A stretch of DNA of 64,000 nt from Chlorokybus atmophyticus (GCA_009103225.1 RHPI01001737.1:802091-866090); one strand, 5' to 3'. Shown: positions 1 through 47,928, numbered from the stretch's first letter. Notes: generated from the letters alone by a model not told the origin. Numbers and translations are program-made.

Positions 1-24
1 CCCCCAAGTATTTGCCTGTTGCAG

Positions 25-1734
25 GGTACCAGCCCTGGATCAGCCTACTCTAATTTGGATCAAGGAGTAGTAGCACAAGGCAGCTCTGGAGGAGCCGATT
101 CTAGGGAAGCAGGGGTAGCGCAAGGCAAAGATAATGCGAAGAGCGGCAACGTGTTCAGCGCCCTCAAGGAGCGTGTGGGGGATGTGGCGTCGAACACTAA
201 GAATCCCAGGGAAGCTGTTGGCAAGGTTGCTAGCGGTGACATTGGCGGTGCTGCCGGCAAGGTTAAGAGTGATATGGAGGCTGCCCCTGGCAGAATAGGC
301 AACGACTTTGGCTTTGGACAGGGCATTTTTGGTGCAGTTGGTGACAAGATCAAGGACTTGGTTTCTCCTGGAAACAATTCTGTGAGTGCTGAACTGTATG
401 TGCAAGCCATGCGGTTGTGGCTGCAACATCATCTGGTTCTAGGTTCGGATGAGGCTGTGTCTGTATTGAAATATATGCCATATACACACGCGGCATATGT
501 TGGGTGCTCTATGATGTCTGGTCTTACGCACTCGCAAGGCACTGACCTTCTTGTGTCCTTGCCTTAGCAGCTGCGTAACACTTCATTCACCCCCGGAAAG
601 GACATGTCCTACTCTGATGCTGCTGATGGCGGCGTGTACAACAAGCTGCTGGGCGCCCAGGATGAGGTCTCAGCGCAGGGCAAGTCCGACAGCTCCATTG
701 GCAACATGCAGAGCACTTTCAGAGAGAAGTCTCGCGAGAACATGGCATCCAGCAGCGGCCCAACTGGGGTGAGGGAGCTGATATGCCTGACTGAAGATAG
801 TGTGTGCGCATGTGGGTGATAATGACGGCACCAACTGCCAGTGACTGTGGCAACATTCACGATGATTCAGCTGTCTACCGCATACGCTTGCGTCGCTGTC
901 AGCTCCTTTTATTCCGTGGAGTAGTGCAAGAGTATAAATACTCACGTTGGAGTGTTTACATCATGACACTGCAGTGCACACCGCATCCCTTTGACTGTGA
1001 CCCTGCCCATTGCAGGGAGGCAGTGATGCTCGGGAAGCAGGCGTTGCACAGGGCAAGGAGGATGCGAAGAGTGGCAATGTGTTCAGCGCCCTTAAGGAGC
1101 GTGTCGGCGATGTGGTCTCTAACCTAGAAAACCCCAAGGAAGCCGTTGGCAAGGCTGCGCAGGGTGATATCGGTGGCGCTGTTGGCAAGGTGAAGAGCGA
1201 TGCTGAGGCTGCACCGGGCAAAGTGGGCAATGATCTCGGCTTCGGGCAAGGCGTCGTTGGTGCACTTGGTGACAAGGTCAAGGACTTGGCCTCTGGCAAC
1301 AACCCGGTAAGTGCCGTGTTCGTGTTGCTGCTGCATGCTACGTGGCAGCTGGCGTAATGCTGTCTCTCCTTGTGTTGTGTCTATGAAGTCCGCCTGTTGT
1401 GTATGCTTTATACTGATAGATCATTGCATGCGCACACTGATATCTTTTGTACTTGCAGCTGCGCAACATGTCTTTCACTCCCGGTAAGGACATCTCCTAT
1501 TCTGATGCTGCCGATGGCGGTGTGTACAACAAGCTGATGGGTGCTAAGGATGAGGTTGCGGCCCAGGGTAAGTCTGACAGCTCCGTTGGTAACATGCAGA
1601 GCACTTTCCGCGAACGCTCTCGCAGTGAGTTTGCATCCAATGTCAGCCCAAAGGAGGTTGTAGGCAACACGTGCAAGTGTGGCGCTGACTGCAACTGCAA
1701 TGACTGCAACTGTGCTGGTTGTGGTTGCAACTAG
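25..1734 (+). CDS. Internally duplicated glycine/lysine-rich hydrophilic (LEA/CsbD-like) protein with a C-terminal metallothionein-like Cys cluster; 5' end lies upstream of the window
   Basis: Four exons joined by phase-0 GT-AG introns: 25-381, about 568/571-768, 1016-1306 and 1459-1734. Exons 1 and 3 are paralogous (KSGNVFSALKERVGDV...EAVGK..GDIGGA.GKVKSD) and exons 2 and 4 are paralogous (SYSDAADGGVYNKL.GA.DEV.AQGKSDSS.GNMQSTFRE). The final codons read TCKCGADCNCNDCNCAGCGCN-stop. Confidence 0.75.
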
Positions 1735-6500: not shown

Positions 6501-7962
6501 TGCTGCACCAAGGCAGGTTCTGCAGCCCCTCGTGTACCCGCTGGCGCAGATTATCACCGGTGTGATACGATTGGTGCCCACGCCTCGCTACTTCCCGTTG
6601 CGCTTGAGATGCGTTTCTTTGCTCAACAAACTGTCTGCCTTCTCCCACCAGTTCATCCCAGTTGCACCGCACCTTCTGGAGGTTAGCAGGATGTGCGCCT
6701 GTTGTGCATTATTATGTTGCAAGTGCCGTTGAAGGTGGCTGTGATACAGTGAACTATTGTCGTGTCATCATCAGGTGTTGCAAAGCAGTGACCTCAGCAA
6801 GCCTCCGACGGGAACAGCTTCGCCGTCGCTGGACTTGCAGATGACACTGAAGGTCACAAAGCAAGCAGTTCGGGCGAAGTCGTTCCAAGACCTTTGTGTA
6901 GCAGAAGCGCTGCTGCTGTCAGCAGAGCATTTCTCGCAATGGGCGCTGCATATATCCTTTCCTGAGCTGGCACTGGCTCCACTTGTGCAGGTGTGTTACT
7001 GGTCAAATTTTCATCAAGCGTATCTCGTGTATGCATGCATTGCGTAAACCTCTAATGGGCAGCCTGTCCACCTGGATTTGAGGTTGCTGTGCTTCCAGTG
7101 TAGCACAACTTTCAAACAGTAGTTTCTTGTTGCACTCAATGTGCTTTTTACAAGCTCACATACGGTGTACATGCAGTTGAGGAAGCTTGCCAAGGACTTG
7201 CCAGTGGAGCGGTTCAGGAAGCAGGTGAAGCAACTGGTTGACGGCATGGAAGCCAACATCGTCTTTGTTGGCCAGCGAAGAGATGCTGTGGACTTCAGCC
7301 CGAAGGACGCTGCGGCCATTGCAAACTTCATGTCCGACAAGGCTCCCGCCGACAGCCCTCTCGTGCGATACACAAACACACTGCTTGAGAAAGCCGTCCA
7401 GCTGAGGCAGCAGGCGCGCGCGGGTGAAGTGGTCTTGCGTGAAGGGAAGAGAAAACCACACGCTGACAGCGAAGAAGATGGCGACGATGAACCTACGGCT
7501 GAGGCTGCGTTTAGTGGCAACTGGCTGCCATCAGGCAAACCGGCTGCAAGGCCTGAAGCGCGTGGTGAGGATGACGAAGATGAGTCCAGTGAGGAGGAGA
7601 AGCAACAGAAGCAGCAGAAGAAGAAGGGGACAGAGGGCAAGGATGCTATGCGGGCGGAGTTGCCAGCTGAGACGGACGAAATGCTTCCTGACGATGAGTT
7701 GGAAGAACTCGTGCTTTCTGATGATGAAGATCTCGTGCAAAGCTTGGATGGAGGTGATGATGACGTAGGTGATGACGATGATGGCGATGATGGTGAGGAC
7801 AATCGCCCGAGGCCCAGCCCTGTCAAGGGTGGCAGGGGTAAGGCTGCACGTGGTAAACATGCCAACAAAGCACAGAACAACCTGCACAAGGTGAAAGGGG
7901 GCATCCAGAAGAAGACAAGAAAGCAGTCTTTTGCCAAGAACAAGCAGAGGACTAAGCACTGA
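3554..7962 (+). CDS. NOC2: Nucleolar complex protein 2 homolog (multi-exon)
   Basis: Basic N-terminus MGKKPKKSLKKF; motifs DPEFFKYLEEHDKELLDF, LLRAFRAACHYG, RQLAIMLRNA...YKNVYCWQYINC.ELW and LQPLVYPLAQIITGVIRLVPTPRYFPLRLRC; acidic/basic C-terminal exon 7177-7962. Confidence 0.93.
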
Positions 7963-11159: not shown

Positions 11160-12470
11160 TGCAACGACCACCACCACCACCACAACGACCACCTCCGCCG
11201 CTGCCGCCCACAGCCACCACAGGCTTAATCCTGGGCTTAATTCTACCCGCAAGAAACGAAACCCTAATTCCATCGCCACTGTGCCGACACTCGCTGTCGA
11301 CGCGCGCTGCCAAGCGATTGTCAGCCGTTCCTTCTCGCATACGCCGACGCTACCCGCGGCTGTTGTCCAGTCCGAGTCAGCACTGACGCTGACACACGGG
11401 GGAAAAAGGTGTGACATATTGCCACATAAGCAATGCATTTGCTTGAGAGGCACAACAATGGAGTGGGTGAAAAGGCAGGCAGGCGGGCCGCGGTTGGCGG
11501 ATGCTTCTGTGTGTTTTTAGCACTGTGCTTGTTGGAGCAAGCGACTTGCTGCTGCTGCTGCTAGTTGGTGCGCATTGTGCACTGTGTGTGTGTGATTTGG
11601 TTTTGCATGCCAGTGTGAAAGGTTGTGTTTGGTAGGATTGTGCTGCCTAGGCCTAGCCACACAGCAGCTTACTACTACCTGGTGGTGGTGAGCAACTGCT
11701 TGGTGTCAAGTGTGGGTGAAGTTTTCTTGCTGGTGACGGCTGCAGTTGATGGTCGCCCATCAGTTGAACGACAACTTGAAGTTGTGTGCTGGGTGGTGTT
11801 GAAGATAGAAATCACAGGGTGGACTACAGGACAGCAGCAGGTTGGTGGCTGCTAAGCTCTCCGCAGTCCTTATAACCACCATAACCACCATGCAGCTTGC
11901 TAGTTGGTGTGCCTTGGGTGCGGTTGTCTGTGCGCTGGTGGTAAAGGGATGGTATGCCAGCTGTCAACATGCTGCAGTAACTTGCCACCAGTTTGGGAAG
12001 GATTTTTTGCTTGCTGTGCAAGCCACTTTGCTGCACATGCGTCAGGCAAGCAGCGTCCTTCACTTGTTTACTCAACTTGCAGTTTGGTCTACTGACCCTC
12101 ACAGCGGTTATGGTAAGCTTCTCGCCCTCGTTGTGGCCTGGTTGTACTGTAGACTTTGGGTGGTGTGCTTGCACGCACGTTATGTTGCATGCGTGTTGTA
12201 TCCGTTTTCATACGCAGCTGCAGATCAACGAGGGTCAGGTTGTTGCTCCTTTATGTAATCCTTGTTATGCACTCTTTGCCTGCCCTTCCATTTCTGCTAA
12301 CCTTGTCCGTTGACTCTCTCATTTGTGGACTCTGTCAAGTATCTGCAACTACTGGGTGTTAACTCTTCCCATTTTTTGGTGCGCAGGGTGACGTAGATGC
12401 CAGGTTGTTTAACCCGCAACGACACAACACTGACGACAACACCAATTCCAACATCAGCAGTAGAGGCAGG

Positions 12471-14433
12471 ATGACCGTTTCTTGTTGGGGTCTCATCACC
12501 GAGCTATGTCGGAAGCTGTGCTCTTCAGGCCAAGCCAAAGGCACGGATGTGATCAACAGCGCCGTGACCGACGAGTGCCTCGCCTTCACAATGGGTCAGC
12601 TTTCCACGCAAGACCGCAACAGCTGCTCTCTGGTCTGCAAGAGGTGGCACAGACTCAACAATGTGTCGCGCAAGAGGCTGCGGCTCATATCTCCCACGCA
12701 CAATGAGGCTCCCGTGCCAGTGCCCACCACGTTGTTTGCAAGATTTCCCAACCTCGAGCATATAGACCTCTCCCTCGCTTACGCCCACATTGACGATGAT
12801 ATTCTCTTCAAGATTGCCGCCTCCTGCCACAAGCTCCAACACCTTGACGTGCGCTTCTGCGAGCGTGTCACGGACAATGGGATTGCTGCCATTGCACGAG
12901 GCTGCCCTGACCTGAGGGCTGTGCTGCTCAACAACTCGTCTGGTGAGTGTGACTGTTGTGCATCGCGCACTTACGAGTGCATATGTTCACGCATGTTCCT
13001 GAGTATATGCACGTTTGTGTTGTATGCACAACGCATACGTATGGACACATGTGTGTCCATATGCATAGGACACGTTCACATGCAGTTATGTACCATTGTA
13101 TATGTGTAAGAGTTTTGGTCCAAACCAGTGCTGATTGTGGTATGGCATGTTTATGCATGTAAGCAGTCAGTTTTCCGGATTGACAGTCATCAATGTCACA
13201 GCGGTGTGGTAACTCATTGACTGACTATGCATGGCACGGTTGCAGGAGTCGGGTTTGAGGGCGTGAGCGCGCTGGTGCGTTGCTGCAAGAAGCTCCGGTC
13301 GCTAGAGGTGGCGCGCTGCAAAGGAATGGACAACAAGACGCTGTCGTTTGTGGGGAGTGGGTGCAGGACGCTGGAATCCCTAGCGCTCATGCGCTGCGAG
13401 GCTGTGACGGACGCGGGCTTGTCGGGCATCGGGCTTGGCTGCATCGGGCTCAAGCAGCTTAGCCTGTCGGGCTGCGAGGGCGTCACTGCGCGCGGCATAT
13501 CCGTCATAGTCCGTGGATGCAAAGTCCTTCAGAAACTGGACCTCAGCAACTGCAGGTACATGATGGGATGTTGCAAACTCAATGGACTACTACTGTAGCA
13601 ACAATGCAACTTGTGCAAATCGGGCTATCATCCAACGTATACTTCATCCCAAATGTGACATGCAGAGTATATAGTTGTACATCATAGTAGCTTTCTCTGC
13701 TGCAGGCGTTTTGTGGGTCCATGTCGAGTTTGTGTAATAGTATCTCAACATGTACCACTCATCAACTGTGACAAACAACTCACAGTTGTGTGCCAATACT
13801 CATATTTATACCAAGCTTCTCTCATTCAGGCAACTCGGTGACGATGCGTTGAGGGCTATTGCGTCTCAATGCGGGTGGCTTGAGGAGCTCAAGCTCGTGG
13901 GTTGCGCTGCGGGCGACGCGGGTCTTCAGGCCCTCTCAACGTGCCGTCGCCTTCGCCACCTCGACATATCCTACTGCGAGGGTCTTACGAGCGCAGGTCT
14001 CTCTCAGTTTGTGGCGGCCTGCAAGACACTTCGTTCTCTGACCGCGCGGGGTCTCTCCCATGCAATGGACGACAGCGCCCTCACAGCCATAGGAGAGAAC
14101 GGCAAGCGCATCGAGAGTTTGGACCTGAGCTACTGCCAGGAGCTCTCTGACTTAGGCTTGAAGGATGTCGCTAATGGCTGCGGGTCCCTCAAGACTCTGA
14201 AGTTGTTTAATTGTTCTGGTGCGGCTTCGGCGGGAGTCGTTGCTGTGGCCCACGGGTGTGGCATCCTCGCTCACCTTGATGTCGCGTACACCAACGTCGG
14301 CGACCACGCCCTCGCATCCGTCGTGCGACATTGCAAGTTCCTAGAGAAGGTCGTTGTCACGGGGTGCCCGAGGGTCACCGCCAAGGGCGTGCAGGAGGCC
14401 GCGACCTTTGCGGATGTGCAGATCGTCAGGTAG
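12471..14433 (+). CDS. F-box/leucine-rich-repeat (FBXL-type) protein; start codon uncertain
   Basis: F-box-like INSAVTDECLAFTMGQLSTQDRNSCSLVCKRWHRL followed by many cysteine-containing LRR units (L..LDV..CERVTD.G). Three coding exons at about 12471-12943, 13246-13556 and 13830-14433. The frame is also open from the acceptor at 12387, so an upstream coding exon is possible. Confidence 0.88.
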
Positions 14434-18200: not shown

Positions 18201-21200
18201 ATTGCGACTGCCAAAACAGTTGTGTGTGTCATCAATTTTCGCCAAAAAGTACATTTTGCCCTTTGACATGAGCGCTCGTACACCACAACACGTATGAGCG
18301 CTCCAATTATGTGAGTGCGTGAGCGTGAGGATGAGTCTGATTGTGCGTGTGAGTGTGGGTGTCAGTGTCAGTACACGCGTGCTTATATACGTGTACGAGT
18401 GCATACACTCATACTCACCTGTACAGGCACATGACGGTGTACTGCCCGACAAGCTCTACGAGAAGTGCGTTCTCCTTGAGTGCAGCCTCAGACATCTGCT
18501 CGGGCGCAGGCAAGTCCGCTGCATAGCCCTCACCGCTGGGCATCGCAACCTCCTTGTTATCATCGTCAACATCGTCCACCGGGGCCTTAAAGCTCGCGGG
18601 CGCGTTGGGCGTGCGGTCCCACTTGGCTCTCTCGCGCGTGTTGGTGGTGTTGCCGCTGCCACCCTGCTGCTGTTGTTGTTGCTGTTTGTTGCTGGCGATG
18701 AGCGCCTGCTCTGCTATCCTCTCGGCGTCCTGCGATTGAAGAGTTGGTATATGCACGAATTGTGCGAGCGTATAGGTCTGATATTGCAAGCATGCATGCA
18801 CTCATCCATGACATTTGCACTTGCGCACGCAAATCGTTTATGCAATCATGCGCGCATGCATGCATACATGTGTGTATAAAGGAGTGTCTGGGTATGCCCT
18901 ACCACAGATCAAACAGCACACTGCAGCTTTTGCCATTGCATATACGCATGCGTGAACCCTGCGTGTTACTGCGCAGTTGTGCAAGTGGAGCAGGGAGTCT
19001 CAGTCCATAATTCACTCAACAGTACAGTGCACCTCAGCTTCTTGGCATGCATAGATATGCTGGAATACATGCCTAGAATGCAAGTTTGCTTCAAACATTG
19101 TACCTCAGGTTCTTCCTTCGGCGGTGGCAGGGGTCGATCATCGTACGCAGCGTAGTCTCGGCGCCGATCCATAGACTGGCGCATGGCAAGCATCTGCGCG
19201 GATGCGGACGGGTTGTCACGTGAGATTGGGCTGGAGGGCGAGATGATGATGGGCTGCGATGATAGTTGCTGCTTTGCCACGCCGACCGCTGTGTTGTCAC
19301 TGTGCACACGCAACAAGGAGTCAGAAGCACTTGAGGGAGAGAGAACGAGTGTGCGTGCGCGCGTGCGTGTGTATGCGTGCATGCGAGCATGTGCATGCAC
19401 TATGTGACACTGTGTATGTGTCACACTGTCGATTGTTAAACAGTGTGATACATACACAGCCACTGTCAAATACAGCGAGTGTTAAACACATTGAACACAT
19501 TTGCTCTGTTTCCTCACTTGAAGGATGCGCGCTTGCTGATGGGTGCATCCACATGTTGTTGGTGAAGGTAGCTGTTGCTGTCCTGTTGTTGGCCCGTCCG
19601 CACCCTGTCTATCTCCGCCTTGATGGCTTTGGCCAGGTCGTAGTCTTCATTTTCCACAGCCGCGCGCTTCTTGGCTTCCAGCTTCGCGACGTTCAGGCCG
19701 AGGGCGCGCAGCTTGTCGATGGTCATCTGCGTGAGACACGCGTGTGTTGGCTTGTGTGTGTGAGCAGCATGACGTTGGTGTTGGGTGTGTTGGGTGAGGC
19801 TCAACCAAACCTTGAGTCGCTTGGCTTCGTCGTAGTCTTCGGCGCGGACTGCCTCCTCCTTCTGGCGCAGAACCTGCGTGCACATGGATGCTGAGAGACG
19901 TGTACTCCGCAAGAAAGACACGGGTGATGAGTGGTAGGTGAACTACAGATATAAAGTATTGTGATCTTATGACAACCTGCATATGAACATGTAAATTTAT
20001 GAACCTTCGTCTGCATGCATGCATCATTGTGCGCAGCTGTATCTCACAGACATGCAAACAAATGAACTGAGACTGTTTCTGCGTGTAAGGTGGTGTGCAT
20101 ACGCACACATGTTGGTCGGCAGCTCACCTCCTTGATCTTCTGCGCAGTCACAGCGTCAACATCAAGCACGGCAGCGTCCTCCTCAGCCGAAGAGTGCCGC
20201 CCTCCGCCATTGCTGGCATGTCTGGAAAAACGCAGGCCCACCAATCAGCAGTGCTTGCATGGGCTTGAAGAGCGACTTGCAACACTTTGCATAGCATTAG
20301 GTTACCTTGTGGTTTCAACTCCATTTGAGAAGGCGCTTGCGAGCTGAGGAGAGGATGAGTCCAAACGCTCCCCAATAATGTTCAAGGCTACAATGCCAAC
20401 CTGAGCATGGACGGCAGTCAGCACTGATGTGCGTTTTTGGCATGCGTGGGCTGTTGCTGTGTACACGGTGACTCTGCACACGTGCGCACACACTGCCTGC
20501 GAGCACACGCACTCATGGATGTGTGCATGCGCATCTGTGAGTATGTACACGCGTGCATGGGTGTGCACGATTGTGCCTGGGTGCGTGCACGCATATGTGT
20601 GTACGGGTACGCGTGTGTGCGTGAATGTATCTGCATGTGCATGCCTACGTATATGTCTGCCTGTGCGCGCACACGCCAGCGTGTATGCGTGTGGGCGCGT
20701 GTTGGAATTTAGAGGCCATGTCAACCTGTGAGTGCATGTTGAGGGAATTGGGATGGCATTTGTGCAGCACCAGGCGGACAAGTAGTGCCGACACGTCCAC
20801 ATGTATAGACTTGAGCTCTCGAGCTTGGTGGCCGCTGCGCTCGTTGTTATCAAATGACACATGCCTGCAGCATACGCAGCGCGCTCAAATAAAGCAAATA
20901 CCATCCCCNNNNNNNNNNNNNNNNNNNNNNNNNNNNNNNNNNNNNNNNNNNNNNNNNNNNNNNNNNNNNNNNNNNNNNNNNNNNNNNNNNNNNNNNNNNN
21001 NNNCACATATCTTCTAGACATGCGCACGCACGCACGCCCACCCACCCACCCACCCACCCACACAGGCATTCTCGCCATGGCGAGCCATTTATCGCACGCA
21101 CTCACCCCAAGCGCTTCATCGCGCATTGCGTGTAGTCATTGGATCCGGCGGGTGGCGCGCCAACATACAGCTCCACCTTGCTCGCAATCTGCGCCAACAA

Positions 21201-29263: not shown

Positions 29264-32998
<3,735 letters not shown>

Positions 32999-37840: not shown

Positions 37841-44635
<6,795 letters not shown>

Positions 44636-45408: not shown

Positions 45409-47928
45409 ATGCCTGCTGCGGGCTCACCATCAACAACAACATCCGGCAAGATCCGCGTTGTTGCGAGGGTTCGTCCATTACTTCCACGCGAACTTCTCGA
45501 CGAGGAGTGCGTTTCCGTCCGCGAGGACGGCCGCACCGTCGCGGTCGCCAGCACCGTCTCCAGAAACAACAAGGAGAACGTCAACGTGGTCACGAGCGGG
45601 TTCGATGCGGTGCTGGGGACAAATGCTGGACAGGTGGGTGGGGAAGAGGGTGGGTGCATGTGATGAGGGGAGAGGGATTGGGAGGGAGTTGGGTTGGGTC
45701 TAATGTTGGGTGGTGGTGGTGGTGGTGACAGGAGGATGCGTATGAGACGGTCAGGGGACATGTTCAGGGGGTACTTAAGGGGCTCAACGCGTGCATCCTG
45801 GCTTACGGACAGACAGGCAAGTGGTGATGTTAACAAGTGTTGGTGATGATGATCGTCCAACAACACTTGGAGACGAGGGTTTCTTTTCGCATCCAGGTAC
45901 GGGTAAGACGTACACGATGCTTGGAGCAGAGCCCTCCGCCGCCGCGTACGCCGACCCTCGCCTCGCCCACCTCCACGGCATCACGCCCCGTGCCGCCCAG
46001 GAGCTGTTTGCCGCGGGACCACCCGGCCTCGCCGTCAAATGCAGCTACGTAGAGGCAAGTGTGACACCCACACCCACACCCACACCCACACCCACACCCA
46101 CACCCACACCCATCCCCATCCCACCCACCCNNNNNNNNNNNNNNNNNNNNNNNNNNNNNNNNNNNNNNNNNNNNNNNNNNNNNNNNNNNNNNNNNNNNNN
46201 NNNNNNNNNNNNNNNNNNNNNNNNNNNNNNNNNNNNNNNNNNNNNNNNNNNNNNNNNNNNNNNNNNNNNNNNNNNNNNNNNNNNNNNNNNNNNNNNNNNN
46301 NNNNNNAAGTAACTAAGCCAATCTCGCATGCTTATTGAGTGGTTGTGACTAGTGAACCCACCCACCCACTCACCCACCCAGGTCTACAACGAGAAGCTCT
46401 ACGACCTCCTCGCCGGCGTGGAGGGCGGCGTTCCCACCAAACCCATGCGTGGCTCTGACCCGTTAGATGTTGGGCGTGTGCGCGCGGGCTTGGAGTTGCG
46501 TGAGGAGGGAGGTGGTGTGTATGTGGAGGGTCTGACGGAGATCGAGGTCGGGAGCGCGGGGGCGGTGATGGCGTTGGTTGGAAGGGGCCAGAGGACGAGA
46601 GCCACGAGACATACGGAGATGAACCAGGTGGGGAAGGAGATGAGAGGGATGGCTTTGTGTGTTACTTGGTGATGCGTCAGTAGTACATACACACTGGCAA
46701 TGGACATGCGTCGCCAGCAGTGGCTGAATACGCATAGCATTATCACATATGTAACCAGCCTGCGCCAGTGTAGACTTTCGTACGGAGTGTGCTGCATGAG
46801 CCACCATCACAGTCGCAGGCGTGTTACCGTGCTTGTGTGACGATGAGCCAACATTGTCGTGCCCATGCAGATGAGTTCGCGGTCGCACGCGGTGTTGACG
46901 CTGGAACTGTCTTCCAACGCGGGCGAAATCTGCGGGACGAAGCTGAGGCTGGTGGACTTGGCGGGCAGCGAGCGGTGGGACACGGGCATACAGGTAGGAG
47001 TTGTGTGCGTGTACGTGTGTGCATGTGTGCGCAAGTTTGTGGTGATGTGTGCGCACGCGTGATTCACAATCACATTGGGACAGGGTTATGCAGGTGAGTT
47101 GTGTGCGTGTGCATGTGTGTGTGTGTGTATGCACGCACGCGCGCGCACACGTGTGTATGTACAGGATACGTAAAGTGCTGTTGTGCACACGCATTGCCGT
47201 GCGTGCATGCGTGTGTCCGTGCGTGCGTGCGTGTGTTTGTGCGTGCGTGAGTTGCAATTGCACCGTAACCCATTGCCACATACACACCCACACGCTCACA
47301 TGCAGATGGGTGCGGGTCGCGAGCGCGAGTTGACTGCGATCAACACGTCTCTGAGCGCATTGACGAGCGTGATCGCGTCCCTGACGGAGAGCGGTCGCAG
47401 CCACGTGCCGTTCAGGGACTCCGCGCTCACGTTCTTGCTACAAGACTCGCTGGCGGGGAACTGCCGCACAGCGCTCATCGCCACGCTATCGCCAGCCAAG
47501 GTAAAACAATGGGTAGACAAGGATGAATACACAAAAATCATGATAGTGGGTAGCAGCTTTGCAGCCCATGCAAACTATCCCAACGAGCATGGCTTGCAAC
47601 AAAAAGACAAGCAGTAACCATACCAGACGCACACACACAACACAAGGAGAGCAGTGGCGTCCTTTGTTTGAGCAGCTTGAGACGACATCAGTGTTTTGTG
47701 GTATCGCCAAGCGCTGCGTATGCTGCCAAAGCAGACTCACTACAACTCCATGCACCTGTGCGATTGGCGAGACTGACTGACCATGTGATACTGATGTTGA
47801 GAATATCCGTGCAGAGCTCACTCGAAGAAACGGTCTCAACGCTCAAGTTCGCAGACAGAGCTCGCCGAATAGTGACAGGTATGTACAAGCTACCCTGCGT
47901 CATGAATATCACATACACGTGCACACAG

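Follow-up and report, generated by a model that had tools for sequence, protein, structure and literature searches.

A candidate metallothionein-type cysteine tail on a species-restricted repeat protein of the streptophyte alga Chlorokybus atmophyticus

Introduction

Plant type 1 and type 2 metallothioneins carry in their C-terminal domain a cysteine array of the pattern CxCxxxCxCxxCxC (PMC5430376; PMC3677015). In Drosophila, a Cys cluster of the transcription factor MTF-1 (CNCTNCKCDQTKSCHGGDC) serves as a tetranuclear Cu(I) (Cu4) sensor within a large protein (PMC2396432). Here we describe a gene at the left end of a 64,000-nucleotide (nt) stretch of the Chlorokybus atmophyticus genome (GCA_009103225.1, RHPI01001737.1:802091-866090), referred to below as the window, whose product as we read it is a long repeat protein that ends in a run of eight Cys. 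An earlier reading of the same DNA (the original prediction) had described the gene as a LEA/CsbD-like repeat protein fused to a metallothionein-like tail, in which desiccation protection and metal buffering would be combined in one protein. Our own reading, to which we assign a probability of about one half, is that of a single-copy, lineage-restricted repeat protein gene with an appended plant-type thiolate cluster, the product of which is probably delivered to the plastid.

Results and discussion

The cysteine tail and known cysteine clusters

As read here, and as the original prediction had it, the spliced product ends in four CxC pairs made up of eight Cys, reading C-K-C-GAD-C-N-C-ND-C-N-C and then AG-C-G-C. 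The CxCx3CxCx2CxC spacing is identical to that of the published plant type 1/2 pattern, with an extra xxCxC following it, so that the claim of a Cys cluster of metallothionein type is borne out as far as spacing goes. Between the Cys stand small and polar residues (K, G, A, D and N), none of them aromatic. Exons 1-3 encode no Cys at all, and the other Cys of the public gene model, introduced below, sit in its N-terminal presequence.

In a PDB sequence search, the sole Cys-based match of the tail among solved structures was wheat Ec-1 (PDB 2kak), a protein that carries CxCGxxCxCxxCxC segments. The tail segment TCKCGADCNCNDCNCAG aligns with Ec-1 TCGCGEHCGCNPCACGR (residues 5-21) with six of six Cys in register and with Thr, Gly and Asn in register too; a second Ec-1 segment, CSCGAACNCASC, aligns with the tail as well. 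The top PDB matches of the tail were designed ankyrin repeat proteins, which we rejected as spurious: they match the string K.GAD.N..D without any Cys. Protein Atlas returned nothing for the tail.

The overall architecture differs from that of the plant metallothioneins, which are proteins of 60-85 amino acids (aa) with two Cys domains, whereas here one cluster ends a repeat protein of ~697 aa. Two or three Cys-rich domains with a Cys-free spacer in a small protein, the layout by which metallothioneins are recognized, are not found in this product. On paper the tail resembles a metallothionein domain; the protein itself appears to be no member of the metallothionein family. Like the tail, the Cys cluster of Drosophila MTF-1 is short, rich in CxC and attached to a large protein that is no metallothionein (PMC2396432), but the Cys spacing is another one and MTF-1 is an animal transcription factor, and we claim no homology between the two.

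Gene structure, public gene model and relatives

On the + strand, a eukaryotic gene with introns has its 3' part, including four exons, at window positions 1-1734 (Table 1). Since the window opens with an intron acceptor at positions 1-24, the start of the gene lies to its left. Read-through is blocked in all three internal introns, each of which has an in-frame stop or a frame-breaking length.

Table 1. Coordinates of the repeat protein gene and its parts, counted from the first nucleotide of the window (a slash marks the exon border).
Feature	Position	Strand	Remarks
Intron 3' end, before first window exon	1-24	+	Ends ...TTGCAG acceptor
Exon 1: B-like linker remnant and A module (copy 3 of 4)	25-381	+	P0001 residues 325-443; donor tct/GTGAGT
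Intron 1	382-570	+	189 nt, phase 0; GTGAGT..CAG; unalignable to counterpart intron 1307-1458
Exon 2: B module copy 1	571-768	+	P0001 residues 444-509
Intron 2	769-1015	+	247 nt, phase 0; GTGAGG..CAG; read-through gives 16 residues, then three stops
Exon 3: A module copy 4	1016-1306	+	P0001 residues 510-606
Intron 3	1307-1458	+	152 nt, phase 0; GTAAGT..CAG
Exon 4: terminal coding exon as read here	1459-1734	+	91 aa; B copy 2 at 1459-1656, linker to 1671, Cys tail, stop
Extra intron of public model Chlat1/7455	1484-1599	+	116 nt; ccg/GTAAGG ... TGCAG/ag
Cys tail, T-CKCGADCNCNDCNCAGCGCN	1669-1731	+	Eight Cys, CxCx3CxCx2CxCx2CxC; Cys cluster itself 1672-1731
Stop codon of tail-bearing frame	1732-1734	+	TAG
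TGTAA	1766-1770	+	First base 32 nt past stop; presumably a green-algal poly(A) signal, putative for this species
Module A copies in window	88-381 and 1016-1306	+
Module B copies in window	571-768 and 1459-1656	+

The gene corresponds to Chlorokybus atmophyticus Joint Genome Institute (JGI) model Chlat1/7455 (Chrsp6S07498; EukProt EP00898 P007171), which encodes a protein of 623 aa, hereafter P0001. P0001 residues 325-614 are identical to what exons 1-3 encode together with the first 8 residues of exon 4, and this exact match to an independent public model confirms the exon chain up to residue 8 of exon 4. P0001 residues 1-324 are encoded left of the window, and the protein reads ...NPL/GTSPGSAY across the junction at 24/25. 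The intron-bearing gene and the exon chain of the original prediction thus stand, with canonical splice ends and with exons 1-3 identical in the public model, and its guess of a streptophyte alga as the source was right, the public model naming Chlorokybus atmophyticus. Its count of two module copies in the spliced product holds within the window, but the window truncates the gene and the full public model has four A modules.

These A modules occupy P0001 residues 125-224, 225-~320, 346-443 and 510-606; a short B-like linker lies at 325-345 and the first B module (B1) at 444-509. The N-terminus, which falls outside the window and had no part in the original prediction, has a presequence-like stretch followed by a hydrophobic segment. 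P0001 residues 1-32 are a doubtful 5' extension that looks spurious. From Met33 onward, residues 33-75 hold 9 Ser, 7 Arg and 6 Ala and one acidic residue; a KK pair then precedes a moderately hydrophobic segment of 19 residues (93-111, mean Kyte-Doolittle value 1.63), which is followed by AAPQAAKD. This is probably the layout of a bipartite plastid/lumen signal or of a membrane anchor, and it is from this layout that we infer plastid targeting.

A profile search with module A against 1.84 billion representative proteins gave one true match, P0001 (E 2e-182); two further matches (P0002 and P0003) are spurious repeat proteins. No protein other than P0001 came up when exon 3, exon 4 and P0001 were used as queries in word-index searches. 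The word-index searches skipped proteins of ~160-342 aa, a size range that was included in the exhaustive profile search; the exons were searched singly, and P0001 was used for the full-length context. In the supplements of the genome paper neither the gene nor metallothioneins are mentioned. The gene family appears so far to be confined to Chlorokybus atmophyticus. The original prediction had not recognized the fusion as a described one, and indeed no fusion of a repeat protein to a metallothionein tail turned up in the protein searches or in a literature search.

Duplication of the modules and purifying selection

The exons in the window are a tandem duplication of a two-exon unit composed of module A (~97 aa) and module B (66 aa), and the Gly-rich duplicated modules of the original prediction were recovered. 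In DNA alignments, copy 1 (88-366 plus 567-770) and copy 2 (1016-1294 plus 1455-1658) are 77% identical in module A and 79% identical in module B; the protein identities are 78 and 77%, respectively. The Nei-Gojobori estimates of synonymous (dS) and non-synonymous (dN) divergence are dS 1.10 and dN 0.13 for module A (dN/dS 0.12), and dS 0.68 and dN 0.13 for module B (dN/dS 0.19). No alignment could be obtained between the corresponding introns of the two copies. The ratios of 0.12 and 0.19 show that both module copies code for protein and are subject to purifying selection; the duplication is old, and each copy has been retained as protein.

The two modules are themselves related. Both are built on a common motif of ~40 aa that contains an amphipathic helix, and the second half of B and the first half of A are paralogous, as seen in ...AQGKSDSSVGNMQSTFRERSRSEFASNV-SPKEVVGNT (second B module, B2) and ...AQGKEDAKSGNVFSALKERVG-DVVSNLENPKEAVGKA (A). 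The A modules are rich in Gly, Ala, Val, Lys and Asp, and the top amphipathic segment is GNVFSALKERVGDVVSNL, with a hydrophobic moment of 0.43.

This relationship extends to the border of the Cys tail. The linker of the terminal exon, up to 1671, is paralogous to the start of the A module. By tblastn the match between B2 and A (E 1e-4) reaches nt 1677, MAFFT also places B2 on A, and hhalign aligns A 7-47 with B2 31-71 at 43% identity (E 2e-5), B2 residue 71 being the Thr immediately before the first Cys. Since homology to A reaches this Thr, the frame read here is coding up to the tail. The final unit looks like an A module cut short after ...PKEVVGN, with a cluster of 20 residues and eight Cys in place of the remainder.

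We also considered whether intron 2, behind copy 1, holds the remains of a Cys tail; read-through there gives ...VRELICLTEDSVCACG followed by three stops. This candidate was unsupported: its local alignment scored 20, where shuffled sequences averaged 14 (p ~0.03), and the control, intron 1, reached a higher score of 30. A neutral relic would be undetectable anyway because dS between the copies is ~0.7-1.1.

Splicing of the last exon

The public model removes a further intron, 1484-1599, from the last exon and so splices the Cys tail out, a conflict that had no place in the original prediction. Splicing out 1484-1599 reproduces the C-terminus of P0001 exactly (...LRNMSFTP-EHFPRTLSQ; last 17 residues, scripted check) and shifts the frame to a TGA at 1626-1628. 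Under the public model, 1484-1599 would be missing from the mRNA, the protein would end in ...LRNMSFTPEHFPRTLSQ at 1626-1628, and the CxC run would be a functionless frame in the 3' untranslated region, decaying or accidental. Besides the ending of P0001 itself, the strong donor ccg/GTAAGG speaks for this alternative, as does the origin of the gene models: they were merged from ab initio, homology and transcript evidence by a pipeline that used transcript assemblies, and most of them are transcript-supported (PMC7027972). An ab initio finder without an intron hint would also be unlikely to pick a last exon of 29 nt.

The supposed intron, however, is the best-conserved part between the two copies, at 85% nt identity and dN/dS 0.09, whereas the true introns cannot be aligned. 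Compared with copy 1, 22 of its codons are identical, 10 differ synonymously and 5 non-synonymously. Its GT donor is due to one synonymous base (GGA in copy 1, GGT in copy 2), and its acceptor has the poorest pyrimidine tract among the acceptors of the gene. Beyond it, the A-type homology continues in the frame read here up to the residue preceding the first Cys, past both the TGA at 1626-1628 and the potential donor at 1625.

A chance origin of the CxC run was weighed in the same way. The window is rich in (TG)n-type simple sequence that translates as CVCVCV, and Cys-rich open frames are thus common in it, a point in favor of the public model. Wherever else the tail pattern occurs in the window, its source is (TG)n/(GC)n-type or Cys-run simple sequence. 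The tail is of another kind: Tandem Repeats Finder reported nothing there, even at score 30, so the tail is not simple-sequence DNA, and its eight of eight Cys have mixed codons (five TGC and three TGT). In 30 whole-window shuffles the Cys pattern of the tail was seen once. The tail does contain a 15-nt internal near-duplication (DCNCN/DCNC), and the canonical spacing survives the loss of either copy.

We concluded that the extra intron 1484-1599 most likely reflects either a mistake in the annotation or a minor isoform, and that the tail is probably translated in a substantial share of transcripts. That the public model gives the true and only ending of the protein is unlikely in our view, though to be taken seriously.

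The modules and stress-protein families

The original prediction took the modules for LEA/CsbD-like hydrophilic units, and if they were true LEA/CsbD homologues the gene would encode a desiccation protectant joined to a metallothionein. The modules do recall LEA proteins and hydrophilins in being Gly-rich (17%), moderately hydrophilic, low-complexity tandem repeats with amphipathic, helix-prone segments, and they come from a subaerial organism (PMC7027972). A local likeness of the form ...PKEAVGKA..GD... points the same way, and a likeness to the CsbD-like stress proteins (PF05532), seen by eye only, lies in short helical motifs rich in Lys, Gly, Ala and Asp. CsbD proteins are single small bacterial proteins, whereas here modules of 97 aa are repeated four times. 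A weak lead from a protein language model connected module A to the small actinobacterial Rv1893 family (PF23706); its score of 0.80 is below the 0.9 level of a lead and there was no Pfam match, and the candidate was dropped.

The family searches did not bear out the LEA/CsbD label. In hidden Markov model (HMM) searches at E<=10, no LEA (LEA_1-6), dehydrin, SMP or CsbD family of Pfam or NCBIfam matched any exon or the whole of P0001, and neither database gave a metallothionein match; for the single exons and the tail pieces Pfam returned no family of any kind. The four sub-threshold Pfam matches of P0001 (LPP, DUF4358, MlaA and Phasin) are unrelated. A PDB profile search with module A gave nothing meaningful, and the profile search described above found no relatives of the module among 1.84 billion representative proteins.

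The hydrophilin claim fared no better. Hydrophilins have more than 6% Gly and a hydrophilicity index above 1 (PMC7448490). The Gly content of 17% passes, but the grand average of hydropathy (GRAVY) is -0.50 for the mature part (P0001 residues 115-606) and -0.36 to -0.88 per module, corresponding to a hydrophilicity index of ~0.5, short of the required value. The protein has a net charge near zero, and a charge-hydropathy comparison puts its A modules with folded proteins. An AlphaFold model of the third A module with B1 (A3+B1), computed from a five-row alignment, had helices over ~40% of the residues, with a predicted local distance difference test score (pLDDT) of 45 and a predicted template modeling score (pTM) of 0.13; the low pLDDT is compatible with disorder or merely with a shallow alignment. 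The likeness to LEA and CsbD proteins thus appears to be one of composition only, and we consider true homology to these families, and with it the desiccation protectant of the original prediction, very improbable. Desiccation protection as a function is possible given the subaerial habit of the alga (PMC7027972), and received no support from this analysis.

Proposed role of the tailed protein

In the reading that we prefer, the product would have ~697 aa, made up of 606 residues shared with the public model and the 91-aa last exon. The Ser/Arg/Ala-rich presequence and the one hydrophobic segment would target it to the plastid, possibly to the thylakoid lumen or as a membrane-anchored protein. 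The four A modules and the two B modules interleaved with them would form a flexible, largely helical or disordered scaffold, and the tail at its end would fold round metal ions as a thiolate cluster. Such a cluster might hold 2-3 Zn/Cd or ~4 Cu(I), as estimated from the M2Cys6, M3Cys9 and Cu4S6 cluster stoichiometries. The protein would then be a small metal store or a metal-dependent switch tethered to a scaffold in or on the plastid. Because there is one cluster per ~700 residues, it would be a poor bulk buffer, and buffering is no likelier a role for it than delivery, sensing or redox switching. We infer tail translation, targeting, metal binding and any stress role from the sequence features described above.

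A different role for a translated tail would be that of a redox or disulfide cross-linking end, or of a Cu(I)-sensing switch that alters the assembly of the scaffold, especially in the oxidizing thylakoid lumen, with no metal buffering involved. The bipartite-looking presequence with its hydrophobic segment is consistent with this alternative, the single eight-Cys cluster would be a poor stoichiometric buffer for ~700 aa, and MTF-1 provides the precedent of a CxC Cu4 sensor (PMC2396432). The spacing of the tail, however, is that of metal-storing plant metallothioneins, and the lumen targeting is only putative, with no AxA site behind the hydrophobic segment. We regard this alternative as distinctly unlikely.

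Several results weigh against the reading of a repeat protein with an appended metal-binding cluster, delivered to the plastid. The public model is without the Cys tail and most of B2, a loss of 83 residues, and the 1484-1599 intron might occur in real transcripts, given that the models were transcript-informed; a consensus GTGAGT at 1625-1630 is a cryptic donor in addition. Between the last aligned base of the copy 1/copy 2 DNA comparison (1658) and the stop lie 24 codons, which would be open by chance in about one case out of three, and from the onset of the tail to the stop there are only 20. Protein searches found no orthologues to show conservation of the tail. The match to wheat Ec-1 falls short of significance (E 0.25, with high bias), and at Pfam E<=10 no metallothionein HMM matched exon 4 or tail pieces of 25 and 30 residues, a test in which a short and biased query had to pass the HMMER filters. 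The N-terminus lies outside the window and is known from the public model alone, and a clean AxA cleavage site was not found after its hydrophobic segment. The AlphaFold model, with its pLDDT of 45, is uninformative and was not used for a fold search.

Implications

The Chlorokybus lineage is sister to all other streptophytes. Should the tail prove to be translated and to bind metal, the Cys module of plant metallothioneins would act here as a domain added to a large protein, one that is probably targeted to the plastid. The gene would then bear on the age and modularity of the plant metallothionein motif and on the handling of metals or redox stress in the plastid of a subaerial alga. The strongest form of this proposal is that a native fusion between a Cys module of plant metallothionein type and a repeat scaffold, species-restricted and plastid-targeted, exists in the streptophyte lineage that diverged first; we offer it tentatively and consider it doubtful in its entirety. 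Were it true, the CxCx3CxCx2CxC unit would predate land plants as a portable module, and there would be Cu/Zn delivery or buffering, or redox sensing, inside the chloroplast, perhaps in the thylakoid lumen. To our knowledge, no metallothionein-type protein is known from the thylakoid lumen or another chloroplast compartment, and a literature search returned none from the chloroplast or its thylakoid lumen. The apparent mis-splicing of the last exon of Chlat1/7455 is, in addition, the type of error that would hide short Cys-rich domains from proteome-based surveys.

Other features of the window

Simple sequence accounts for several long open reading frames (ORFs) elsewhere in the window. Positions 42400-43560 consist of (TG)n alone over ~1.1 kb (G 50%, T 49%) and translate in several frames into artefactual CVCVCV ORFs that lack stops and are 380-625 aa long. 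This tract falls within 37841-44635, a feature described as a ciliary scaffold in the first reading of the window, and an exon model there should avoid it. On the + strand, a pyrimidine tract of ~1.1 kb at 29900-31000 (C 44%, T 45%) holds ORFs of 360-476 aa in five frames, which are simple sequence and no genes. Runs of N, marking assembly gaps, are found at 20909-21003 and 46131-46306, and single Ns at 30919, 39258 and 43497.

The next recognizable gene downstream on the same strand is represented by an exon-sized ORF at 7141-7959 (+) that matches the C-terminal part of the Noc2p family (PF03715, E 3.5e-13). Two ORFs at 12405-14430 (+) with F-box (PF18511, PF00646) and leucine-rich repeat (LRR) matches are probably exons of one F-box/LRR gene.

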